NCBI RefSeq assembly: GCF_001194135.2
Contig: NC_068990.1
Span: 70,258,902-70,322,901, forward strand
DNA from: Octopus bimaculoides
Taxonomy: Eukaryota
DNA length: 64,000 bases
Reading direction: 5' to 3'
Shown piece after piece: positions 361-54,429 of the stretch; the stretch's first letter is position 1; every line of letters begins with the position of its first letter. The position numbers and the translations under genes are program-made. The notes beneath the pieces were generated by a model. That model was given only the letters and a program-made list of their open reading frames with translations, ran no database searches and was not told the DNA's origin.

Positions 361-436
361 GCTGTGATTTGGTGTGGTAGAGAATTCTTTCTCAAAGCAC
401 TGGGTGTTGAAATGCCTGAAAATCATGGACAGTCAG
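361..436 (+). CDS. Candidate internal coding exon A of an unidentified gene (AVIWCGREFFLKALGVEMPENHGQS, phase 0 to 1)
   Basis: Acceptor ttactgatag at 360 and donor CAG|gtaatt at 437. Only one frame is open. Paired with a downstream complementary intronic sequence. Confidence 0.6.
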
Positions 437-488
437 GTAATTCACTTCTAATCTAGGAGTGATGGACATCGATGTTTCACCATTTTTC

Positions 489-558
489 TCCATGACTTTC
501 TGGTGTTTTTAACACCCTGTGCTTTGAGAGTGTATTCTCCACCACATCAAACCGTAGC
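489..558 (+). promoter_or_regulatory. Putative editing-complementary sequence (ECS) for exon 361-436
   Basis: Its reverse complement aligns to 361-429 with 7 G:U, 4 U:U and 3 A:C positions and one bulge. The copy has a stop (TGG>TGA) and a frameshift in the exon frame, so it is not a coding duplicate. Confidence 0.65.
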
Positions 559-3126: not shown

Positions 3127-3874
3127 TCCTCCTTTCGTCTAAGTGTCACCTGAGCACTTCTAGCTGCAGTCCTATCTTTTTATTCTTTGGTTTAACGAAA
3201 TTACTTTTTGGCTTAACGAAGTTATAAAATTATCTTTTATATATATTTATATGTATGTGTGTGTGTTTGTGTGTCTTTATCCCCCCACCATTGCTTGACA
3301 ACCAATGTAGGTGTGTTTACATCTCCATAACTTAGTGGTTTGGCAAAAGCAGCTAATAGAATAAGTACTAGGCTTACAAAGAATAAGTCCTGGGGTCAAT
3401 TTCTTCGACTAAAAAAGCCCTTAAGGTGGTGCTCCAGCATGGCTGCAGTCAAATGACTGAAACAAGTAAAAGATTTAAAGAAAATATATAAAATGTTTCA
3501 ACAATTTTTTTTGTACAATTCTTAATAATATTTAATTTTAAAAATACATTTGGATGGTTTTTTTTTATACACATCAGATAGGTATTGAGTAAAATAGGAA
3601 TCACAGGGGTCCAGAGCATATCAATCCAAAATGATTGATAACCTCTGATTTAAACTGTCTTGTGCTACCATCCACCATGTAACCCAGTCACTGACATCAG
3701 TCTGTACACTATGTCTGTAGCTGTTGTTGCACTGGAGGAAAACTTGTCAAAAAATTTATGAGTTTGTGACTAACTCGCCAAAGAACTGATTTTTGGTACT
3801 TAGTTGGCTGTCTTTTGAAGGTGTATTAAAACTGTATACTATTATATGTTGTTTGATATTAATTTTGTTTTTAG

Positions 3875-3925: not shown

Positions 3926-4424
3926 GTAAAGAAAGTTTAACTCTCTCACTGTTTATGTAGATATTTTCTTTGCTGGCTCATAGTATTAATGTATATCTTT
4001 ATGGTGGTGGTCATGGTGGTGAGCCTAAAGTAGGATTTTGACTGAATGAGAGTGATAAGAAAAAAGAAAGAAAAAAATGTAATATTGAGAATATTCTTCA
4101 TTGATGTTGTATCCTTAAAGCTGAGAAGGAAGAAGTTTGAGCTACTTGTTAGATATCCATTCAGATTTTTAAAATCCATATTCTTTTATTATCTTACTTG
4201 TTTCAGTCATTTGACTGCAGCCATGCTGGAGCATCACCTTGAAGGCTTTTAGTCAAACAAATCGACCCCAGGACTTATTTCTTAAGCATAGTACTTATTC
4301 TATCAGCCTCTTTTGCCGAACTGCTAAGTTACGGGGACGTAAACACACCAACACTAGTTGTTAAGCAGTGATGGGATGGGGGTGGGGGAACAAACACAGA
4401 CACACATAAATATATACATATGTA

Positions 4425-4482
<58 letters not shown>

Positions 4483-4485
<3 letters not shown>

Positions 4486-4626
4486 TCATCATCATCGTTT
4501 AACGTCCGCTTTCCATGCTAGCATGGGTTGGACGATTTGACTGAGGACTGGTGCAACCGGATGGCTACACCAGGCTCCAATCTAATTTGGCAGAGTTTCT
4601 ACAGCTGGATGCCCTTCCTAACGCCA
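4483..4626 (-). mobile_element. Inverted truncated R3 copy
   Basis: Reverse complement of 161-308 with only two substitutions seen. Confidence 0.9.
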
Positions 4627-4629
4627 TAT

Positions 4630-5270
4630 ATATATAGTGACTGAGACCTTTGGAAATATGCTGTGCGTGAGAAGACCTGACAAGCGAAGCAAAACCATAG
4701 CCCGTCGCCTATGCCCATTTATGCATACCTTTCCTTCATTGGACACTAAACTCTGCTTGTTAAGACCTGTTGAGGCAAGTGAAATCGAAAGTGAAATCGA
4801 AATTGAAATCAAATGCGATGACTGGTATCCGTGCTAGTGGAGCTCTAAGAGCACCATCCGACTGTGATCGTTGCCAGAGCAGCTGACTGGCTTCTGTGCC
4901 GGTGGAACGTAAAAAGCACCATTTGAGTGTGATCGTTATCACCGTCACCTTACTGGCATGTGAAAAACATTCGAGCGAGGTTGTTGCCAGTACTGCTGGA
5001 CTGGCTCCTGTGCAGGTGGCATGTAAAAAACACCATTTGAGCATGGCCATTGCCAGTACCACCTGACCGGCCCTCGTGCTGGTGGCACGTAAAAGCACCC
5101 ACTACACTCTCAGAGTGGTTGGCTTTAAGAAGGGCATCCAGCTGTAGAAACTCTGCCAGATCAGATTGGAGCCTGGTGCAGCCATCTGGTTCACCAGTCC
5201 TCAGTCAAATCGTCCAACCCATGCCAGTATGGAAAGCTGACGTTAAACGATGATGATGATGATGATGATG
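4630..5270 (+). mobile_element. Longer R3 retroposon copy with internal tandem motifs and a (GAT)n tail
   Basis: Repeated ggtggcacgtaaaagcacc motifs and the same 3' end as 20-308. Related copies at about 35420-35935 (-) and 53140-53516 (+). Confidence 0.8.
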
Positions 5271-5274
5271 ATAT

Positions 5275-5308
<34 letters not shown>

Positions 5309-5578: not shown

Positions 5579-6979
5579 GTGTGTCAGACTGTTGGAAATA
5601 TGGATATATCACCTTTAGCAACTCCTATACCATTGTATATATAAGAGCAGCAGGACTAGCCAATCTTTTTGTTTAAATATCAAGGATTACATTGTCTAAA
5701 ATATCCTTCTATAAGACAGTAGAGTGTAATTTGATAGAGATTTGGCAGTTATTTCTAACTGATTGAGTGAGCACATAGAGGCTCCCTCATTAACTTATCA
5801 ACTCATGTATAATGATAATGTAAGTGTATGGACAATATTGATGTAGGAAGGGCTACCAGCATTAATGGTATTGTTAGTAATAGCTGTAGTGGTGGAGATG
5901 ATGATAGTGCTAGTAGGATTAGTGCTAGTAGGAATGGTGCTAGATGTTGTTGTTGTTATTATTAGTAGTAGAAACATTATCCTGTTATTAGGTAAGCATT
6001 AATGAGTTCTCATTCCCAGACTATAACAACCTAGCTAGTTTTTTTTTTTAAATTCTCTGATTCCTTTCTCAACAACATATTTTCAATAACTCTGTTTATG
6101 TACGTATATGCTTCAATGCTGCCATCAATAATTCAGGCTACTTCTTTAAAGCAATTCTCTATGAATAGAAGTATGTTGACTGATGGGATAAAGTGGTTTT
6201 GCTGTTAACTCAAATGTTATAAATCATAATGTTTAAGTATCATACATATCTCTCTTTCTTAAAGAACCTAAGGTGTTATTTGAGGTCAATTTGACTGCTA
6301 TATCTAACAGGTCATGCAGAGACCATGTAGTGAGCTCCTCATTGCTTGATCATTTCCATTGTAGATATTATGGCTAAGGGGATTAAATTATTAAGAAAAA
6401 TTGATACACTTGAAGAACTGGCATCTATATTCTTCACAATTCTCAACATAGATGGGAATATAAATACTAACCTTTTACTGTAGTAAATGGTTAGCATTAT
6501 GGAAAGGTAAGCTGGTAGACTTGTTAGCATGCTGGAAAAAATACTTTGTGGCATTTCTTCTGGCTTTACATTTGGAGTTCAAATTCCTTTGAGGACAACT
6601 TTGCTCTTCATCCCTTCAGAGTCTATAATTACCAATTGTGTACTGAAGTTGATGTAATTGACTCTTCCCTCCAAATTTCAAGCCTTGTGCTTACAATAGA
6701 AAATTTATAGAATGGTTGACAGAATCATTAGAGCATTGTGGTATTTTGATCTGGTTTTTTATCTTGCTGAGGTCAACTTTGCCTTTCATCCTTTAGAATA
6801 TAGTACTAGTGAAGTACTGGGGTTGATTATTCTCACCCCCATAAATTTCTGGCCTTGTGCCTATGCTAGAAACAGTTATAGAAAGGCAACCAACTGGTAA
6901 AAGATTTAAAAAAAAAAAAAGTAGATATCAAATTTTGTGGAGCTGTCCAACCGTTGCTAACTTGGAAAGTTGTATACTC

Positions 6980-7328
6980 TTTTACTTGTTTCACTCATTT
7001 GACTGCAGCCATGCTGGAGCACCACCTTTTAGTCGAGCAAATCGACCTCAGGACTTATTCTTTGGAAGCCTAGTACTTATTCTATTGGTCTCTTTTGCCG
7101 AACCGCTAAGTTACGGGGACATAAACACACCACCATCGGTTGTCAAGCGATGCTCGGGGGGACAAACACAGACGCACAAACATATACACACACATACATA
7201 TATATACAATATATACGATGGGCTTCTTTCAGTTTCTGTCTACCAAATCCACTCACAAGGCTTTCGTCGGCCCGAGGCTATAGTAGAAGACACTTGCCCA
7301 AGGTGCCATGCAGTTGGAATGAACCTGA
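6980..7328 (-). mobile_element. S1 SINE running into an assembly gap; approximate start
   Basis: Reverse complement of the 13016-13378 copy. Confidence 0.85.
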
Positions 7329-13173: not shown

Positions 13174-13378
13174 CTGTGTTTGTCCCCCTAGCATTGCTTG
13201 ACAACCGATGCTGGTGTGTTTATGTCCCCGTCACTTAGCGGTTCGGCAAAAGAGACTGATAGAATAAGTACTAGGCTTCCAAAGAATAAGTCCTGAGGTC
13301 GATTTGCTCGACTAAAGGCGGTGCTCCAGCATGGCCACAGTCAAATGACTAAAACAAGTAAAAGAGTAAAAAGAGTAA
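13016..13378 (+). mobile_element. Near full-length young S1 SINE (pol III A/B-box-like head, internal microsatellite in gap)
   Basis: A-box-like TGGCTGTGTGG, B-box-like GGTTCAGTCCC, CpGs retained, tail gtcaaatgactaaaacaagtaaaagag. Confidence 0.85.
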
Positions 13379-15728: not shown

Positions 15729-15834
15729 GGAAGAGGCTAAACAGAAAGACTCCATATAGTGTACTCAATTGTATAATGTTTATGTTGGAACAGCGATACA
15801 ACAGATTTAATAAGACTGGAAAAAAATGAAGTGA

Positions 15835-16130
15835 ACATGCTCCATTGGATGTGCAGTGTGAGTGTGTATACAAAACTGCTGAGTGAAAAACTGGGTATAG
15901 GAAGAATCAGATGTGTTCAAGAAAGAAGACTGTGCTGGTATGAACATGTGATGCATATGGATGAGGTCATTTATATAGAAAAAAGTGTTGTTTGCTTAAT
16001 GTGGCCGGAACCTTCAGAAGTGGAAGACATGGGAGGAAGTGATGAAAACTGACTTCAGGACCCTTGAGCCTAATGGATGAGATAACAAAGGACCAGGATC
16101 TCTGGCAATATGAGGTTCTCAAAAAGACAC
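15835..16130 (+). mobile_element. RTE-like LINE 3' fragment
   Basis: EKLGIGRIRCVQERRLCWYEHVMHMDE, similar to the RTE C-terminal RRLRWFGHV motif. Confidence 0.6.
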
Positions 16131-19344: not shown

Positions 19345-22300
19345 CATACATACAGAGTGTGGTGAATATCCAAATTATGTAAAAATAAAAATAACACTGA
19401 CATCTCATTTTAACAGATATATTTACGAAAATTACATAAAAATATCTTCAAATACTAAAGAGTAAATTTCGCCATTGGCTTCAACCATGACTTCCAGACA
19501 ACTTCAGAATCTCCTGCAACTCTTCTGAATGGTCTCCTTGTTTAAGTTGGTGAATGCTGCCATAATCCTTGCCTTCAGTTCACCTTTGGTGTTACAAGGA
19601 GTTTTGTTGGTCTCTTGATCAACTACGCCACACACAATAATGGAGGGGATTGTAGTCTGGGGAATTAGGTGGCCAGATGTTAGGGGTGGTGTGGACGCAG
19701 AAATTGTCTGACAGCCATGACTGGGTTCTCCTGCTTGTGTGGCATGGTGCAGAGTCCTGTTGCCAGACACAGGGTCTTCCAGCAGCCACTCTGCTGACCC
19801 AGGGCAGCACTACCTCCTCCAGACACTTGATGTAAAACTCCGTGTTGAGTCTGAGGTCATGTGGGAAGATGAATGGAGGTATAACGTTGCCATCACTAGT
19901 GATCACTCCAAACAACATGATGTTGACTGGATGTTTGATTTTTATCACTCTTGGTACATGTTTTGGGGACACTGCAAGCCAATAGTTTTTCTGTGTTTTC
20001 AGCATCTTATCCTGGCAGAAATTTTTCTCATCTGAGAAAGACCAAAGCATGTTCATTAGGAGATGCTTGAGTTTGTTCAACAGCTTTGTAGTGCAATCTT
20101 TCCTCTTGTCCTTGATGGCTTGGGATAAAAATTGGCCCTTTCTCATCTTGTATGAGGAATACCGAATGTCTTCATGCACTACTTGGCTGATAAGAAACTC
20201 AGACGCATCCATGTCCCTGGTGATGGACCTGATTGACTTGGAGGGATCATTGTCAACCATGGTCTGGATCCCACCAACAATTTCAGGAGTTATTTTCTTA
20301 TCAGATCAATCAGAGTGAGGTTTCCAAGCTGCCGTACTTTCATCTACAAATATTTGATATGAATATTGTTTGTATCTGCTGCACCTGTCAGAGTAAGGAT
20401 TTTAACCATCAGTGCCAACTGACCCAATGTCACATGGTGTTAAATGCTGTGCTTTTCAAAATTAGATTCATTGAAACTGCTGTTGGTACTGCACCCCTGT
20501 GCTGTATGAGTGGGTTTGTATATGAATCAAAATCTGGAGTCAAAGTTGCATCAGACATGCATGTTTAGAATATTGACATGTAAACAACTACACAGAACAG
20601 CCAAATTTATCAGACACCATCTCAGGCATCATGCCTTCTCTCCATCACATATGTTTGGTTTCTTCTTGCTATTTGTGCACATGTTACCTACACTTTTTTG
20701 TGTTTGTCTTCTAATTATTTATAAACTATTTTCCAATTTTTAAAAAAAGATAACTTGAGTGATGAGTTTTCATACATACATACATGCATGCATGTATGTA
20801 GGATATATATATATATATATAGATAGATAGATAGATGTATGTGTGTATACACATTCTTACAGTATATTTACCATATGGCATTTTGACATGGATTCATTAA
20901 TTAATAGAATTTTGTAGAAATATAAACCCCAGCTGGATTTTGATGTCTTCCTCTAATTCAGGGTGTCTGGTTTAAAGGAATTATCTTTCTTGTACAGATT
21001 GACTTCTTGATCCTGAATCTCTCCTACAAATAGATGCATAAAATTAAACAGTCTCATATTTGCAAACATGCACATGCATACACACACCTAAAAAAGCTGC
21101 CTGCACACATGTGCCCATGCATCCAAATGTGTAAGTACACAAATATATATGCCCTCACATAAACATTAACTTTATTGGTCAGTATTAACATTGTATAAGA
21201 ATATGTGTGCAACTATGTATTGACATGTACATCTGCCCTTTGATCCTTTAGTAGTTCTTCAATTTGGTTTAGCTATCACTTCTAAAGGTATACTGGAACA
21301 GTGGATTTAGTGCACACATATTTCCTCCTGTTGATCCACTACCCATATTCTCTCTTGCTCCTTAGATGTTGTGCTCTGGTACCCCATCACTACCATCTTA
21401 TCTTTCCCTTGATACTCCCACCCACCCTTATATAATGCAGGGTAGCCATGTATTTTCTCTATGGCAAAACACCTCTACACTTCTGCTTGTCCCTGGCATA
21501 AAGCCACGTCCCTGCTCTTTCAAATATTCTCATCAAGAGGACTTTGTCCTTTTCCCCATATTTGTTTTTTCCTGTCTTGCAAGTTACCTGGCAACTTCAC
21601 TATTCCTGGCACCATGATAAAAAGCACCAAGCACACATTGTAAATTGGTTGATGTTAGGAAGGTTGTCCAGCCATAGAAATCTGCCAGTGGAGCTTTGCT
21701 GGATCCCGTTAAACTGACCTACCCATGCCAGCATGGAAAATGGGCATTAAATGATGATGAGGTATAAAGTCACAAATTATGGAGGTGGTGGTAGGGTCCT
21801 GGCACTTCACCATAAAAGCATATGACATTAAGGTTTCTGTAATCCTTTTATCATTCCTCAAAATAGTAAGGTTTTGAATTCTTGATTGAAACGTAAAGAA
21901 AATTCTATTTCAGATTTTTAATTAATAACAAGTAAGAATAATGATTAAGAATTCTTGATTATTTTGTATAAATATTTTATTTAATTGTTGTGCCTAAGTA
22001 CATTATACAAGGTTTGTAACATGATACAGCAGATGGCCATCTTGTTTACTATGTCATAGTGCTGCCTGTGAACACTTAAGAACCACAGAAGGTTTTAAAA
22101 ATGTGTTCAACACGTAGATTTAAATAATTTGTTAATGTGCCTAACTGGATGCTATCAGATAGTGATGGTGGTGTTGGTGACAGCATCAACAGCAAAATAA
22201 ATTTCTTTATGTTGGCCTGTTATCTTAAATTTGTTTAGAAGACAGTCAATATGGGGAGTTGTGACACTCATTCCTAATAATGGCAAAGAAAATAAGCTCA

Positions 22301-28994: not shown

Positions 28995-29490
28995 CACGAG
29001 GGTGAGCTGAAAAGTTCATAGGCTGACTATGGAGTAATGCTAGACCTGTGGAATTTTGCATGCATTAATTTCAACCTTTCTTATTAATAACTGCATTGTT
29101 TCTTTCTATGTAAACTGACATCTGAAAGGCTATCAAGACCAAATACCTAGGAAAACTGATGAAAGGTTTCTTGTTTCATTGGGATAGTGTTCCAGCATAC
29201 AAGTCCTTGGTTTCTATGACTGCTGTGCATGGCTAGGGCTTTGAACTGGTTGATCACCCTCCCTATTCACATGATTTGACCCCATCTGACTATCATCTCT
29301 TTCCCAATATGACAAAACACTTGGCTGGGAACCAGTACTGTAGCGATGATGACATCATATCTACTGTTGATGACTTTTTGAGCAACAGGATGAAATCTTT
29401 TTCACCAATAAGATCCTAAGCACTGCAACACCAATGGAAGAAATGTATGAACCACAAGGGGGTCTATGTTGAAAAATAAACCTCATTTGA
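28995..29490 (+). mobile_element. Internally deleted mariner remnant (irritans-like TIR)
   Basis: TIR cacgagggtgagctgaaaagttc. C-terminal remnant ELVDHPPYSHDLTPSDYHLFPNMTKHLAG. Confidence 0.75.
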
Positions 29491-29560
29491 TTGTGTGTGT
29501 ATATGTGTGCATGCATGCACACATGCACACATTTTCTTCAAGTGGCTAATGAACTAAATA

Positions 29561-30833
29561 TTGGGTCGTCTCATAAATAATGTGGTTTTTACAATTGCAT
29601 GAACTAAAAGTTGGAGGGGGATGGGATAAACTTGCATCAACTTGCTATAAAAGCAGGTAGTAATTTTACTTTGTACTGATTCTTAGTGCAAGTTTTGAAA
29701 AGTGCAGTTTGATTTTAACTGTTATTTTTTCAAAGCTATTATAGAAGTGACAAAGGAGCATGTTTAGCATATTTTGCTTTGTGTGTTTAATACAGGCAAT
29801 AACGCAACAGAAAGTGCAAGGAATATAAATGCAGTTTATGGGAATCAGACAAGAAGTGTAAGTCAGTGTCAATGGTGGTTCCAAAAATTCCGAGCCAGAA
29901 ACTACAGCCTAGATGATGAGCCTCCTCCTGGAAGATGTGTAGAGCTCCATGAGGACATCCTGCAAACTTTGGTGGAACAAAATCCCATCGTAACCATTGA
30001 GGAACTAACAGAGAAGCTTGGATTTGGTCATTCAACCATTCATCAGCACTTGCATGCCATTAGAAAAATCAGCAAATTGGGTCAATGAGTTCCTCACAAA
30101 CTTTCCGAGTCTAATCGCACGCAGAGAGTGAATGTGTGCTCTCCTTTGCTGTCATGTCTCACCAATGAACCTTTATTTTGGACTGAATAGTGACTGGTGA
30201 TGAGAAATGGATTCTCTATAAAAATGTTATGTGCCAAAGACAGTGGATAGGGAAAGGTGAAAGACCGGCACCCCAGGCTAAAGAAGGTCTTCACTCACAT
30301 AAGGTATTTGGTGGGATATGAAAGGTTTAGTCCACTTTGAATTTTTAAACCCAAACCAAACAATAACAAAGGAGATCTACTGTGAGCAGCTTCAGTGGCT
30401 TAAGTCAGTGCTAGAAGAAAAACGACCATCTTTGGTTTCAAGACAAAAAGTGTTCTTCCATCAGGATAATGCTCTGCCACATACATCGAGGATGACATTG
30501 CAAAGGCTGGAGTAGTTTGAATGGGAAACAATGCCCCACCCACTGCATTCGCCAGACATTGCCCCATCTAATTATCATTTATTCTGCAGTCTTCAAAATC
30601 ATTTGGACGGAAAAAATATGAATTCTGTAGACGAGGTTAGAACAGTACTGGAGGAGTATTCTTCGTCACGGACAAGTGAATTTTGGTAGTGGGGCTCTGC
30701 AAGTCTATCAGATAGAATGAAGAGTATTGTAGAAAATGAAGGAGTGTATATTTTAGACTAAAAAAGAACTTTATCTTAATTTTGAATAATAAAAGAAGTA
30801 TAAAAAAACAGCATTATTTATGGGATGACCCAA
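29561..30833 (+). mobile_element. Full-length (1273 bp) inactive mariner, DD34D
   Basis: TA-flanked TIRs TTGGGTCGTCTCATAAATAATG / CATTATTTATGGGATGACCCAA. Motifs TGDEKW and HQDNALPH...HSPDIAPSNY (34 spacing). Several stops and frameshifts. Confidence 0.95.
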
Positions 30834-32379
30834 TATTTTTATCTCTTTGCATTTGATCTGGGTGATTTCTAGCATGACTGTTTTTTCCAGTTTTTTGACA
30901 ACAGTCGTGAGACTCACAAATCATGTGACACTTCTAGGCCTTCAGTGATAAACAGCCTATTCCATATTATTACCTTCAGTTATTTCTGATGATTGCTGGA
31001 GTTGGAGTTATAGAAAACCAGTTGGTAATATGGCTATTATGGCACTATAATATTATTATTAAGTTGGAGAGTTGGCAGAAACGTTAGCAGACTGGGCAAA
31101 ATGCTTAGTGGCATTTCTTCCGTCCGTTATGCTCTGAGTTCAAATTCCACCAAGGCTGACTTTTCCTTTCATCCTTTTGGGGTTAATAAAATAAGTACCA
31201 CTTGAACACTGGGGGTTGATGTAATTGACTTACTCCACCCCAATTTCCGGGCCTTGTGCTTATAATAGAAATTATTATTGTTATTATTATTATTATGGTA
31301 ATAATAATGATAATAATAATAATAATTATAATAATAATTTCTTTTATTAGCTACAGGGACCTAGATAGGGGTACATCACAAACAGACAACAATTTGTGTG
31401 GTGACTTACATAAAAGATGGGGAGAAAGAACTGGAAAGGACAGTTGAGAAATGGGATAAAAGCATACATTGTATACAAAGTATGTGATAACGTGACTAGT
31501 GCAGTCCTCATGATACAGAAGAAACTATAACTAGGGCCAATCAAAGAACTCTCTACAGATCCAGGATTTTCTCTGACCACAAAAGGTACGAGCCATCTCA
31601 TGCTCTCCAATCTACTGGCACATACTTAGAGTAGGGCCATTCACTCTAGCCATTTTTTCCACAAATAAAAATATTATAATTTAGTTTCACTAATAAAAAT
31701 GTGAGTAATCAATACATTGTGTAGAATGAATATATATTTATTATAATGAATATTGTGACTTTTAAGTACCCTGGTAAATGAAGCATTCTTCAGATGGATG
31801 AGATCTGAATGGAAGTTTTTTTTCTTCTTCAAAGCACATCCATCTTTGTGACTAAATGCCATTGTCAGTACTGTTTCCACTTTCTTTCTTTTCTTTTTTT
31901 CTTTTCTGCCATGATTGTAAGGAAAATGTGTGTGTGAGACATTAAATCACGACTAAGATAAGGGCAAAGGTTTTCAAATCACTCAGTCTATAGGCATGTA
32001 TTTATATCAAGAACAGCCCTGTTTTAGTTCTTGCCTTAAGTGACAAATCCATGATAAAGATCAGTATTGTTATTGAAAACCAAAGTTGGTAGTGTGTGGA
32101 ACAATATTTATTATAGACTCTTGAATTTTATTGTTGTAAATTCTGTGTTCACCTCCTGTCAGAATGAACTTTGACCTTCATCTGAGCATGGTTGAGATAA
32201 AGTACATATATACAAGTAATGCATATATATATGGAGATCAATTCTATCTATTTGTATCTTTTATAAAGCCCCACTTGGTGCTAAATGAAAAGAATTCATC
32301 ATTGTTGTTGTTTTAGTTGTTTTGTTATGATGTATTTCAATGAAGGGAGACCAAATACTAAGAATTAGAATTTTCTTTT

Positions 32380-35400: not shown

Positions 35401-35949
35401 TATATGTTTATATATACTATATATATATCTCATCATCATTTAACGTCCATTTTCCATGTTGGCATGGGTTGGACAGTTCAATTGGAGTCTGGGAAGCTAG
35501 GAGGCTGCACCAGGCCCCAATCTGATCTGGCAGTGTTTCTACAGCTGGATGCCCTTCCTAATGCCAACAGCTCTGAGAGTGTAGTGGGTACTTTTTACGT
35601 GCCACTGGCACAAGGGGGCCAGAGGAGCTGGCATCGACCACGATCAGATGGAGCTTTTTATGTGCCACCGGCATGAAAGCCAGTCAAGGCGGCACTGGCA
35701 TCGGCCATGTTCGGATGGTGCTTTTTACCTGCTACTGGCACAGGGCTCACAACTACAATTTCCATTTGATTTGGTTTTGATATTGCTGATGTTGATGTAC
35801 TTGACTCAATAGGTCTCCTCAAGCATGACATGTCGCCCTACAATCCAAGGTACTTTTGAGTGGGCTGGTTATGTGACACTGGTGTAGGTTACATCTGTGG
35901 ACTCACTTTATTTGCCGGGTCTTCTCAGTCACATATATATATATATATA

Positions 35950-39200: not shown

Positions 39201-42200
39201 ATGATAATTTGAATCAGACAAGACTATAACAGTATTGAGGTAAACATTGGTGAACAATTTGTAAAGAAGCCAAACAAAGACAAGGGTTATAACTCAAAAT
39301 GACAATTAAAGAAAAGTGGTGAAGAGAAGAGAAATAGTTTTAGGTCTCATGAAGTGATGTTAAGTTCTTGATTAATTGTTTTTCATAACCATTAACGAAA
39401 TGCACTGCTGCTTTGGTTATAACTTAAAAAAGGTTCTATAAAATAGTGTTGGTCAGGGTTTAATTTCATTATGAATACAAGAGGTACTGGTATGGTTGTG
39501 TAGTTATAAAATTTGCTTCTCAATCACATGACATTGGGTTCAGCCCTATTGCATGGCACCATGAGCAAGTGTCTTCTACTATAGCTTCAGGCTGATCAAA
39601 ACCTAGTGAGTGAGTGGCTTTGGTAGACAGAAACCAAAACACCCCCCCACCCTCTGCGCACACACAGTACCTTGAAGTTGTGTCCTGACACATTACCACC
39701 ACCATCTCTCTCTCTCCTTTCTCTTCTAATTGGTGTTGCAGTGTATCATCTCTTCTGTAGCAAGACATCTTTATCCCTCTATTATACTTTTTAACTTCTC
39801 ATCAACTGGCACAAAGCCACCTCTCTCAATACTACTCCCTATCCAAGTCAAGGGATCTTTGTCTTGCAGGTGACTCTGTTGGTGCCATGCTAATAGCACC
39901 CAGTAAACTCTGTAAAGTGGTTGGCACTAAGAAGGACATCCAACTGTAGAAACCATGCTAAAGCTGAGAGTTGAGTTTAGTACAGTCCTCTTGCTTGCTA
40001 GCTCATGTCAAACCATCCATCCCATGCTAGCATGGAAAACAGATGATGATTGATAGAAAGAGAAATAGAGAGAAAGCATATGTGTGTGTGTGTGTGTGAG
40101 TGTTTCTTTATTTGTGTTTTTTACTAGTCTTGACATAGTGTGGTGGTTGTGAAGTGTGACACTGTCATACAAGCAGTGTCATCCATTTCCAATATCCTGC
40201 AGAAACATAATATTACCTTGATTAGAAACAGGTGAGAGTTGGTGACAGCAAGAGTATCTGGATGTAGAAAATCTGCCTTAGTAAACTCCGTCTGAGTAGG
40301 GAAAAATAAATGTTAAAACAATGATGATGATGATAAGAGGTTTTGCTTAATAGAATCAGAGGTGGGCTGGTTTTAAAAGGATTACTTGCTATTATAAAAC
40401 AGGTTTTAATATTTTTTCTCAAAAATAAGATGATAATCTGGCACTCCAGCCAAAATGCTCAGTGGTATTTCGTCTGTCTTTACGTTTTGAGTTTAAATTC
40501 CACCGAGGTTGACTTTACCCTTCATCCTTTCAGGGTCTATAAAAATAAGTACCGGCAGAACTCTGGAGTCAGTGTAATCAACTTACCCCTGCCCCACCAA
40601 AAAAATTACTGCCCTTGTGCCAAAATTTGAAACTAATATTTCTGTCAAGAATGCACCACTTCCCATTAAGACTACTGAACAGTTACTAGATATACTTTGT
40701 CAGCTATCTCTGTTAGAGTCACCATGAAGACCACCAGTCACCATTTTTGTGAACAATCCAAGATATAGTTACACAATGATGACGGATCAAGAATGGTCCA
40801 GGGTTAATGTGACATATACATCACTTCTTGCCTGCCTGTCAATCAGCAGTAACCTACCATCATATAGAACTACTTGAACACAAACTAATATAGTGATTGT
40901 GATTTCTAATAATGTTACTTTGACATCATCGCCATCATTATCATCATCATCACCATCATCATTATCATCATTACCATCACCTTCATCATCATCATCATCA
41001 TCATGTTATTGGCTTTCCCTCCCACATGTTTACAGTCTGCTTCATCATAAATCATCCAAATCATCAGAAACTCTATATCAACTCAGCGAGCTACGACATA
41101 TCATTGGCTGCATAAGGTAACCATCCAATAACAGGACATAAAACCAATTAATAATCAATGGGTATTTTGTTGGTTTTCTTGTTATTGGTTTTTGTCTGGC
41201 AGAGGGGGACGGGGGGGGGGAATCTGAGACTGGTGAGATTGACGTGACTAATGTTCGTCTGGAACAATTGCAAGTTGCTGGTTGCTGGACAAATAAACAT
41301 GGACAGGATGGGAATTCCAATGTTCAGGTTCTGGGGAGAAAAGACTGAGAGACAGGGTTAGTGTGGGAGGAGACACAAAATCAATGATGGTAGGAGGGAG
41401 GTAGTGGTAGTAGAAAAGCAGAGCGAGAAGACAGCCTGTCTGTGAGCCAGACGTTGGAGTGTGTAGATTTTAATGTCCGTTTGTGTGTGTGGCTCTCTTT
41501 TACAAACTGATTCTCCTTCCCTCCCTCCCTCTCAATCTCTTGTTCCCTCCTCTCCATCTTGCTGTGATTTCTCTCCCTGATGTAATTATTCAGGATCATT
41601 TTTGTGCTACTCTTACATTTCTCACTTCTTACTCACATTTACATTTGGTTATATCCTTTTTTGCCCATGTCTAAAATGTTAGGAACAATTCAAAATAATT
41701 GTTCAAAATAATTTTCAAATTCCTATTCTTGTTTGTTACTGTTTTCCACTCCTCTCTCCACCTTGAATGGAAGCAGCCAGTGCCGCCATTTGCTCCCCTT
41801 AACCACTTTGGGTCAAAGGACATGGCCTTAAAATCAAGTCTTCAAGGATCCTAACTAGTATTCATTCATACCAGTTGAATTAATTGCCTCTCCTCTCATC
41901 CCATGTCTTTTTCAGGAGTTGACCATTGTTCCTCTGTCGTTCTTTGTGTGTGTGAGTGCATGCATGCATACATTCATGCATGCACTTTCTACATGTCACT
42001 CTAATTCATAACAACTGAAAATAATGCCTGTCTGTGCATTAGTCACTCTTTCCAATTGATGATCCTAACTATATTTTGTAACATTAGAACTGGCTTTGTT
42101 CTTGAATTTCCTACCCAAAAGATGGCATCTCCGTCAATAATATGGAATGCTAAACTTTTGGTAACTTGAAAAATCATTCAGAAATAGGGCGGTCTGCTCT

Positions 42201-43499: not shown

Positions 43500-43810
43500 T
43501 ACAGCACAAAAGCTATGATAGAAAGATTCATGCCAGGAATATCTTTGTGATATCATATCTCAAATGAGGTAATATGAAAATGAAGCAGAGTGAATGATGT
43601 GATTGTTGAATACTGAAAGCCCAAGTTTGCAAAGTTTGCAGCCATGAGTAGCATCCAAGAAATTGGAAAAGGTCACTTGGAAGGCCTCTACAACAATGAG
43701 AAGATGATTTAGTTAAAGAATTTGGGCCAAGATGGGAAAAAAGGGTGCAATCAAGAAAGAATTGGAAGCACATTGTGACCAGTGGTGTATAAAAACATCT
43801 GGCAGCTTGG
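43500..43810 (+). mobile_element. RTE-like LINE 3' fragment
   Basis: Decayed PRNWKRSLGRPLQQ*EDDLVKEFGPRW motif. Confidence 0.6.
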
Positions 43811-44149
43811 TTGATACAGTGATAATAATGAGACAGTTGAGTAAAGATATGGTAATTATAATTAAACTTAGCAATTCTTGATGAAACATTAAATTATTCT
43901 GCAACCTCCTCATTTACTAAATTAAAAGTATGATGATTTAATTTTTCATTAACCTGAGCTTGCTTTTGGTTCTATGATACAAATTACTTGTTTTAAAGTG
44001 ATCTAAACTAAAAACTTCCATTAAAATTTCAAGTTTACTGTATTTATTTTTGTGCTTATGTCACACTTCTAATTTAATAGTAAATCTTGTTAAATTTTTT
44101 TTTCCTTCACAGTTTTAGCCTTGCCCATGAATGTCATACCCCAATTTTA

Positions 44150-44910
44150 TCTAGCTACAACCATATATAAAATAGTGCGAATTATACTCGCTTGCTGAAG
44201 CTGATAAAAACCTACAATGGCTTACATCAGAACTAGGACAAATGCAGGAATGATTGGTCTGAAAATCAGTGTAGGGAAGACCAAAACAATGAACACCAGA
44301 ATTGATGATTGTCAAACAACAACAATTCTAAAGATCAATTAGCAAAATATGAAGACAGATGACAGATTCACCTATGTGGGGAGCATCCTCAGTAACAATG
44401 GCAAAGCTACAGCCATATTCCAATCAGCTTACACACAAAGATTCAGCTCTATAATACCATAGTTCTACCAACAGTTCTCTATATCAATGAGACATGGAGG
44501 AGCACTGAGAAAACAACAGAAAGCTAAATGTTTTCCATCAAAGATGCTTGAGGAGGATTCTAAGAACACACTGCAAGACCACATAAGTAATGAAGATGTT
44601 CTAAAAAGAGCCAACACAAGATCACTTAGCAAAATCGTCACAGAATGAAAATTGAAACTAGCAGGTCATATACTTTGGTTATCAAAATAACACCATTCTA
44701 AAACAGCTTTCAAATGGACACCACCAGCAGGAAATAAATAGAGAGGGAGACCAAAAACTACTTGGCACAGAATATTCATAACCAACATGAAAAAGGCCAA
44801 TATTGCATAGACAGATGTAGAAAAAAAAAAAAAGAAAAAAAAACCACAGCCAGCAGAAACCAGTGGTGTCAATTTGCTGCCCAATGTGCTCAAGAGCATA
44901 GAGAGAGCTG
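44150..44910 (+). mobile_element. RTE-clade LINE reverse transcriptase C-terminal fragment
   Basis: FTYVGSILSNNG, FHQRCLRRIL, ISNEDVLKRA, LKLAGHIL and RGRPKTTW motifs, with stops. Confidence 0.8.
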
Positions 44911-53053: not shown

Positions 53054-54429
53054 ACTATAAACAAATTATTTGTGTTGTTGTTCGGCAAGAAATTGCTGAA
53101 CCCTCATATGTTGTCTAACGATGGGAGAGTCCATGATGATATATATGGCTCCCATGCTGGTGACACGTGAAAAGCACCATTTGAGCATGATCGTTGCCAG
53201 TGTTGCCTTAATGGCACATGTGCCGGTGGCACGTGAAAAACATTCGACTGGCACCCATGCAGGTAGCATGTAAAAAACACTTTTTGAGCATGGTCGTTAG
53301 CAGAACCGCCTGACAGGCCCCCGTGCCGGTGGCATGTAAAAGCACCCACTACACTCTCAGAATGGTTGGCATTAGGAAGGGCATCCACCTGTAGAAACTT
53401 TGCCAGGTCAGACTGAGCCTGGTGCAGCCTCTGGCTCATCAGTCCGCAGTCAAACCGTCCAACCCAAGCCAGCATGGAAAGCAGACGTTAAACGATGATG
53501 ATGATGATGATGATGATATATATATATATATATTTATATCCCACTCCCCCAAAGACATGCTTGAGGAAGTTTTTGGAGCAAGAAGACTAAAAGAGAAAAT
53601 ACTGTCTGTACTAATTATGGAGGGTAGCACTACCAATAAGGTTGAATTAAATGAAAACCCAGTGCCAATGTCAACCACTTATTCTGCTCAAATTCTCATA
53701 GACATCACATATATGAATCCCCTTCCATCACCACCACCCACTCACCTCAGCTAGTAATAAACAACCACAATAAGTCTTATCTTCCACATGTCAGCTGGCC
53801 AATCAAAACTTCAACAGGAACAACGATGAGTTGATGATGATGTTGTAATGTAATAGTATTTGAGTCATTAGTTACTTAAGACCACTTATACAAACTGGAC
53901 TGACTCACTCACTGATCATCATCACCTCTCCACACTCCATGGCTTACAAAACAACGCAATTTGCTGGCTTATTTTCTTTCTCTTCTTTTGTTGTTTCAGG
54001 TTAATTTCTGTTTGAGATAGCCTAGTGGTGGTATGATTGTTTTGGAAGTGAACTGAGCTTCTTATTGTTATTTGGAAATGTGGTGGATCTTCTTTCAGCT
54101 GTTTTAGAAGTGATCATTAAAGAGACACTGCTTGGCAGTATTTAGGAACTTTTTCTCTAAAACCAAACAAACAAACAACAAATATTTCTTTGGTGTCTAA
54201 GTAGTTTTAGAACCTAATCACTCTAAATTTAGAGGACCTCATTATCAGGAAAATTATTATTCCTACTCTGAAGCAAAACATTTACACATGCACACTCTGT
54301 ATGCTTGTCTGACTAACTGTGTATGTGTGTATATGTATATTTGTTATGTACAACCACTTTTCAGTTTCTTTGCTCAGTGTATCGTGGGTACCAACACCTT
54401 TTTCATTAACCATAGTTTATGATTCTTCT

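Follow-up and report, generated by a model that had tools for sequence, protein, structure and literature searches.

The hairpin locus and its surroundings

Near the left end of the window, by which we mean the whole 64-kb stretch of Octopus bimaculoides DNA analysed here, lies a long inverted repeat whose 5′ arm (309–429, + strand) is separated from its inverted copy, the 3′ arm (489–610, + strand), by an apical loop of 59 nt (430–488, + strand). The hairpin is flanked on both sides by dispersed SINE-like repeats. One of these, with a (GAT)n tail (17–307, + strand), abuts the 5′ end of the hairpin and has eight other copies in the window with identities of up to 98.5%. A second dispersed repeat (640–830, + strand) starts 30 nt downstream of the hairpin and has four other copies. 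The 5′ arm and the beginning of the loop contain an exon-like segment (361–436, + strand; between ...ctgatag and gtaatt), which consists of an open frame of 76 nt (AVIWCGREFFLKALGVEMPENHGQS). It is preceded by a putative pyrimidine tract, branch region and acceptor AG (340–360, + strand) and followed by a donor-like CAG/GTAATT (436/437), which lies in the apical loop.

The window consists of repeat-rich DNA with microsatellites, transposon remnants and N gaps; assembly gaps at ~7.3, ~32.7, ~33.1 and ~52.0 kb (409 N in total) mark a scaffold region of draft quality. The (GAT)n-tailed SINE-like family is represented at 17–307, 4492–4626 (− strand), 5074–5253, 35433–35605 (− strand), 39881–40038 and 53322–53498, with copies that are 75–98% identical. 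A Tc1-like transposase remnant (19469–20343, − strand) was recognized by its Pfam DDE_3 domain and contains an open frame of 213 aa (19619–20260). Its DNA is 81% identical to the O. bimaculoides LOC128250757 locus (GCA_001194135.2; L001) and to an ENA contig (L002), and its best protein relatives are 75% identical. L002 has only the transposon in common with the window. Other SINE-like repeats of the window (e.g. 13220–13370 and 6975–7124) match L001 with 80–90% identity, and no match to positions 1–900 of the window was found in L001. A Mos1-type mariner remnant (~29237–30318, + strand) carries the Pfam domains HTH_48 and Transposase_1; an inverted repeat of 36 nt (29556–29590 and 30803–30838, 88.9% identity) may represent mariner terminal repeats. 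By eye, the open segments at 15777–16049 and 43717–44908 (+ strand) resemble the C-terminal parts of proteins of LINE-type retrotransposons; a Pfam search confirmed no reverse-transcriptase domain in them.

Self-comparison of the window by blastn showed that the two arms of the hairpin match each other only and are unique in the window, as the first-pass annotation had noted for the 3′ arm, so that they do not represent a dispersed repeat there. No match to the arms was found in L001 or L002, which together with the window sample ~100 kb of the genome. A further copy of the hairpin was likewise not detected in these ~100 kb, and thus an arrangement of the Alu-pair type, in which the arms are members of a dispersed family, was not encountered. 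Pattern scans with the core of the stem gave no match in metagenome and viral contigs, collections in which cephalopod genomes are absent and from which little can therefore be concluded, and exact look-ups of five ORFs of the window in public assemblies, two of them overlapping the hairpin, returned no record. No target-site duplication was evident at 308/611, though the left edge of the hairpin abuts a later SINE insertion. We also considered that this insertion had truncated the left end of the hairpin, an idea that was dropped when inspection by eye revealed no continuation of pairing between 1–16 and 611–640.

The arms are 76% identical over 121 nt with one indel, corresponding to a divergence of ~24%. 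As this degree of similarity cannot arise otherwise, the locus originated by inverted duplication, which had been put forward in the first-pass annotation as a possible origin. Local inverted repeats occur seven times in the 64-kb window, the hairpin included, so that long hairpins are no rarity here. Of the other six, five consist of repeats found 6–17 times in the window.

The arms pair over about 121–127 positions

The first-pass annotation had described a duplex between 361–429 and 558–489. For a pairing map, the 3′ arm was reverse-complemented and aligned globally to the 5′ arm. The counts given for the duplex proved to be exact: 55 Watson–Crick pairs, seven G:U, three A:C, four U:U and one bulge, without any purine–purine, C:C or C:U clash and with the unpaired base in the 3′ arm. 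Altogether, 62 of 69 positions form Watson–Crick or G:U pairs. This duplex is the inner part only of the full hairpin, which comprises 309–429 and 610–489 and is extended by weak additional pairing out to 303/617, which on the 5′ side involves the (GAT)n tail of the SINE-like element. As an inverted self-match in blastn, 309–429 and 610–489 show 76.4% identity over 123 columns (E = 1e-12), which is far beyond chance. In the repeat search of the window the arms were split into two matches (309–412/507–610 and 410–429/489–508).

Folding of 300–620 with RNAfold, a check suggested in the first-pass annotation for 350–570, yielded one long hairpin with a minimum free energy (MFE) of −143.1 kcal/mol, compared with −72.3 ± 5.2 kcal/mol for dinucleotide shuffles of the same region (z = −13.5). 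The stem comprises ~121–127 positions, of which 75% are Watson–Crick pairs and 86% Watson–Crick or G:U pairs. It is composed of helices of 6–17 bp each that are interrupted by single mismatches, the longest unbroken helix being 17 bp. The stem reaches 52 nt upstream of the proposed acceptor. According to both the pairing map and the MFE structure, the stem encloses the acceptor AG (A359:T560, G360:C559) together with the pyrimidine tract and the likely branch region, 340–360 being paired with 559–580.

The apical loop contains a small near-perfect hairpin of its own at ~442–462 (TCACTTCTA / TAGGAGTGA), just 3′ of the donor-like GT. This small hairpin is off-centre with respect to the axis about which the two arms are symmetric.

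The mismatch spectrum favours pairing of the + strand RNA

In an inverted repeat that diverges neutrally, G:U mismatches are expected to be as frequent as A:C mismatches, and U:U as frequent as A:A. The 32 mismatches of the hairpin comprise 14 G:U versus seven A:C and nine U:U versus one A:A; one belongs to the strongly disruptive class (C:U, A:G, C:C and G:G). For comparison, the six other inverted repeats of the window were pooled. Their 110 mismatches include 38 G:U versus 37 A:C and seven U:U versus nine A:A, and 19 are disruptive; these are transposon pairs, in which part of the divergence is older than the insertion, and hence imperfect neutral controls.

Mismatches tolerated by the + strand RNA (G:U and U:U) thus outnumber those of the A:C and A:A types by 23 to 8 in the hairpin (binomial p = 0.011), as opposed to 45 to 46 in the control inverted repeats (Fisher p = 0.021). 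Strongly disruptive mismatches are rarer (1/32 versus 19/110, p = 0.045), and 10 of the 11 transversion mismatches belong to the U:U/A:A class, compared with 16 of 35 in the controls (p = 0.013); all these comparisons are based on 32 mismatches and give p-values between 0.01 and 0.05. The RNA of the + strand folds 16–17 kcal/mol better than that of the − strand. The bias is 11:3 in the part covered by the exon-like segment and 12:5 in the upstream part. As these ratios are alike, the bias belongs to the whole stem and not to an exon. The density of indels was examined as a further sign of constraint and rejected, since the control repeats have similar gap-to-mismatch ratios.

Transcription-associated mutation asymmetry pushes the sense strand toward G and T, and its known magnitudes are well under the 2.9-fold asymmetry of the hairpin. 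Such an asymmetry would act in the same direction as the mismatch bias of the hairpin, with a window-wide skew of only ~1.1-fold. On the + strand, the unmasked sequence of the window is richer in T than in A (mean skew +0.049, p = 2e-17); the sign does not change in any of the eight 8-kb bins, and a G/C skew is absent. An excess of T over A is typical of the sense strand in long transcription units, as in metazoan introns. The T>A skew and the mismatch spectrum indicate the same strand. The skew gives weak and indirect support for transcription of the + strand, and the window is compatible with a position inside a long + strand transcription unit.

Taken together, these observations provide moderate evidence for a duplex whose pairing has been preserved in the + strand RNA, and the mismatch statistics suggest selection as the cause. 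The earlier proposal that substitutions which keep the RNA paired had tuned a recoding cassette is moderately supported in its first part, by the 23:8 bias toward types tolerated on the + strand, and not in the part concerning selected tuning for recoding.

The exon-like segment has splice-like motifs and no protein relatives

The frame of 361–436 opens directly after the TAG that contains the acceptor AG. As had been noticed before, the 3′ arm has lost this frame: in the same register it reads ATV*CGGEYTLKAQGVKNTRKSW, its fourth codon being a stop, and beyond the 1-nt indel that sets it apart from the 5′ arm the frame is shifted. Scored with rough generic matrices of our own making, the acceptor reaches 3.9 bits and the donor 8.5 bits. 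Among the 10,870 open AG..GT segments of the + strand, 361–436 ranks tenth (top 0.1%), and only three + strand segments, 361–436 included, match or exceed both scores. The other top-ranked segments look like junk, being of low complexity or derived from repeats. Over both strands of the window, ~14 segments have summed scores just as good, which means that exon-like decoys of this quality occur about once per 9 kb. A 3′ splice site buried in a stem should oppose use of the exon.

The interpretation of 361–436 as a coding exon in the first-pass annotation found no backing, as neither a protein, Pfam or PDB homologue nor neighbouring exons could be identified. No Pfam or PDB match to the peptide was obtained even at E <= 10, and a comparison with 5.8 billion protein clusters revealed none that has three 5-residue words in common with the peptide. 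This negative result is meaningful because the collection searched contains O. bimaculoides RefSeq proteins; as a positive control, the transposase remnant of the window retrieved an O. bimaculoides NCBI/UniRef protein (P0076) from the same collection. An exhaustive phmmer search of 1.84 billion representatives with a 31-aa query returned two matches (P0001, E = 4e-8; P0002, E = 7e-5). Both are tandem-repeat proteins in which many weak repeat matches are summed, and they were discarded as artefacts: P0001 contains no single passing stretch and P0002 matches 18 residues at 33% identity. Tandem-repeat proteins may in general gain ‘significant’ whole-sequence E-values in phmmer searches with short peptides by such summing of weak matches.

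The search for a host gene was extended to the remainder of the window. Both strands were scanned with Pfam for every stop-to-stop segment that reached 42 aa (580 in total), and transposase domains and chance-level matches alone were detected. A concatenate of 4,910 aa, made from the non-repetitive + strand segments at 1–48 kb, yielded 2,570 candidates by shared words before the E-value cut-off and no homologue at E <= 0.001. Thus, no exon of a host gene was detected elsewhere in the window by Pfam on both strands or by homology on the + strand at 1–48 kb. Differences between the arms, taken from the pairing map, fall on codon positions 1, 2 and 3 in numbers of 5, 6 and 3, without an excess at third positions. 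Judged by these negative searches, the hairpin region is probably non-coding. Beyond the splice-like motifs, there is nothing positive in favour of 361–436 as an unannotated lineage-specific or alternative cassette exon.

A mirror ‘exon’ in the open frame of the − strand at 477–710 was also considered. It has poor splice scores (acceptor ~0, donor 4.6 bits), runs into a SINE-like repeat and was rejected.

A:C mismatches are not enriched in the stem

In the first-pass annotation, three A:C mismatches had been highlighted as recoding sites. All three are present in the pairing map as described (A367:C552, A379:C540 and A422:C496), and in the frame of AVIWCGREFFLKALGVEMPENHGQS an A>G change would cause the substitutions stated, that is I>V (ATT>GTT), R>G (AGA>GGA) and N>S (AAT>AGT). 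The stem as a whole contains seven A:C mismatches on the + strand, at 345 (UAU), 357 (GAU), 367 (GAU), 379 (UAG), 422 (AAU), 571 (UAC) and 584 (UAU); the A is located in the 5′ arm at the sites from 345 to 422 and in the 3′ arm at 571 and 584. Four of the seven (345, 357, 571 and 584) lie outside the ‘exon’.

ADARs prefer A opposite C with a 5′ U or A and a 3′ G, and disfavour a 5′ G. Of the three exonic sites, A379 (UAG) is in a favoured context, A422 (AAU) in a neutral one and A367 (GAU) has the disfavoured 5′ G; a UAG context hence applies to A379 and not to A367 or A422. Wherever an inverted repeat diverges, transitions give rise to A:C and G:U mismatches; in this stem the A:C class is the scarcer of the two (seven versus 14 G:U). 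Since most A>G changes are non-synonymous, three non-synonymous changes out of three are about what chance would give, and the three A:C mismatches do not exceed it. The concept of a selected multi-site recoding cassette finds no support here, A:C mismatches not being enriched, four of the seven sites lying outside the exon and the exon itself being unsupported.

Editing in squid is stronger in the axon than in the cell bodies at more than 70% of sites, and squid ADAR2 can edit mature mRNAs (PMC7192619). For this reason, the prior for intron-dependent recoding in coleoids is not especially high.

Discussion

We tentatively favour the view, at slightly less than even confidence, that the hairpin is a long dsRNA element in non-coding and probably intronic sequence, paired as + strand RNA, to which ADAR would bind. 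An old local inverted duplication within non-coding, probably intronic DNA would have created two arms of ~121 nt around a spacer of 59 nt, and a + strand transcript of the locus would fold into a long imperfect hairpin with ~127 stem positions. After the duplication, the arms would have retained mainly those substitutions that the + strand helix tolerates (G:U and U:U). Such retention would imply that the hairpin matters as RNA. The hairpin could then serve as a substrate for the dsRNA-binding ADAR, with scattered editing or hyper-editing as the outcome, and might act as an editing inducer or as a dsRNA sink. Binding by ADAR is the most likely activity in the light of general ADAR biochemistry. 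Occlusion of the 3′ splice site of the exon-like segment would be a by-product. The splice signals of this segment, which are in the top 0.1%, fit such a non-coding element less comfortably.

That the structure is instead a functionless relic appears rather unlikely, though it deserves to be taken seriously. A replication-error inverted duplication or an old low-copy foldback or MITE-type element would simply be decaying, the strand bias of its mismatches being due to chance and a mild transcription-associated asymmetry and any editing of a transcript being incidental. Local inverted repeats are indeed common (seven in 64 kb), the hairpin is surrounded by copies of transposons in repeat-rich DNA where no genes were detected, its indel density is like that of the controls, the p-values do not go beyond 0.01–0.05 and the region does have a degree of strand asymmetry, as seen from the T>A skew. 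However, three partly independent features of the mismatches all point toward compatibility with a + strand RNA, and the asymmetry is 2.9-fold compared with a compositional skew of the window of ~1.1-fold and symmetric controls (45:46). In addition, no second copy was seen in the window, L001 or L002, and no target-site duplication at the edges of the hairpin. A recoding cassette, in which 361–436 is a coding cassette exon, the downstream arm its intronic editing-site complementary sequence (ECS) and A367, A379 and A422 selected ADAR sites, is improbable. The duplex and the A:C sites exist exactly as described, with A379 in UAG. Moreover, the frame opens right after the TAG with the acceptor AG, the segment ranks 10 of 10,870 by its splice scores, the 5′ arm retains a frame that its copy has lost, and there are signs of constraint on the + strand at the RNA level. 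Nevertheless, the peptide is absent from all protein resources searched, one of which contains O. bimaculoides RefSeq proteins, and neighbouring exons were not found within the 64 kb. For 52 nt upstream of the acceptor the stem continues through the ‘intron’, its mismatches being of the same style, so that acceptor, pyrimidine tract and branch region are all hidden in it; A:C mismatches are not enriched (seven versus 14 G:U), four of the seven are off the exon and A367 has a 5′ G; and the differences by codon position (5, 6 and 3) show no third-position excess. Editing of axonal and mature mRNAs in squid likewise indicates that intronic partners are often not needed (PMC7192619).

A more specific form of the recoding model assumes that a lineage-specific cassette exon was duplicated in inverted orientation together with its upstream intron in one step and thereby gained its editing partner. 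We consider this form very improbable. If it were true, the stem of 127 positions would present three A:C sites to ADAR and at the same time lock the 3′ splice site, and inclusion of the exon would be coupled to recoding, for instance by temperature- or ADAR-dependent unwinding. We give still less credence to a precursor of small RNAs, that is an hpRNA (endo-siRNA) gene or an unusually long miRNA-type gene that arose by inverted duplication and is diced. The long imperfect single-copy hairpin, its duplicative origin and the apparent constraint at the RNA level would agree with such a gene, and the formation of hairpin genes via inverted duplication is a documented route (bioRxiv 10.1101/682591). 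Yet, no Rfam family was detected in 300–620 even at E <= 1, a stem of 127 positions with a structured loop of 59 nt is unlike animal pre-miRNAs (the stem being about four times longer), and a blastn search revealed no complementary potential target elsewhere in the window. Sub-threshold matches to Rfam miRNA families at 2.4 and 2.9 kb of the window fall in simple repeats.

Long inverted-repeat hairpins and ADAR-bound non-coding duplexes are already known, and the hairpin is a new single-copy example. Its signature of RNA-level constraint is interesting and statistically modest. If the selection is real, the locus would be a long single-copy hairpin, not derived from a transposon, whose RNA form has been preserved in a cephalopod. 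Recoding is far more extensive in coleoids than in the other animals studied, and little has been mapped of the cis-elements by which ADAR is attracted; cataloguing hairpins of this kind could help to explain how ADAR is recruited. The locus also calls for caution in two respects: AG and GT at the ends of an open frame within an inverted repeat do not amount to evidence for an exon, and A:C mismatches are to be expected wherever the arms of an inverted duplication diverge.

The dsRNA element proposed here can be compared with several known systems. With the exon/intron ECS duplexes of mammalian GluA2 (Q/R and R/G sites) and insect Syt1 it shares an imperfect duplex formed within one RNA across a donor-like site, and it has A opposite C, one of these in UAG. 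It differs from them in that its ‘exon’ is without coding support and its stem is far longer (~127 positions). Furthermore, an ECS pairs only the 3′ part of an exon with the downstream intron, whereas the hairpin extends upstream and buries the acceptor. The editing inducer element in intron 9 of Gabra-3 is a conserved hairpin of 149 nt with a 66-bp stem that recruits ADAR (PMC3479170). Both structures are long, stable, non-coding hairpins at a single locus, and in our case, too, the duplex rather than the sequence would matter, via binding of ADAR. Unlike the hairpin, near which no edited exon is known, the Gabra-3 element lies ~150 nt away from an exon whose editing is documented, and its conservation spans human to chicken (PMC3479170). 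On this comparison, the closest functional precedent for the hairpin is a non-coding hairpin of the Gabra-3 type or a hyper-edited inverted-repeat hairpin, and not an ECS.

Young plant MIRNA genes and Drosophila hpRNAs resemble the hairpin in their local inverted duplication followed by mismatches that spare the fold; the hairpin differs from them in being without an Rfam match or an identified target. Drosophila hpRNAs are hairpin genes born by inverted duplication, a class that, to our knowledge, has not been described in cephalopods. With inverted pairs of the Alu type the hairpin has in common a long intramolecular dsRNA in repeat-rich non-coding DNA, but its arms are single-copy, its spacer is only 59 nt long and its mismatch spectrum is strand-biased. 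The window itself contains two inverted pairs of SINE-like repeats, one at 4443–4626 and 5120–5305 (92.5% identical, spacer 494 nt) and the other at 3284–3485 and 4178–4375 (84% identical, spacer 693 nt), both with symmetric mismatch spectra. As these pairs would form longer and more perfect dsRNA, they are likelier substrates for hyper-editing than the hairpin, if transcribed.
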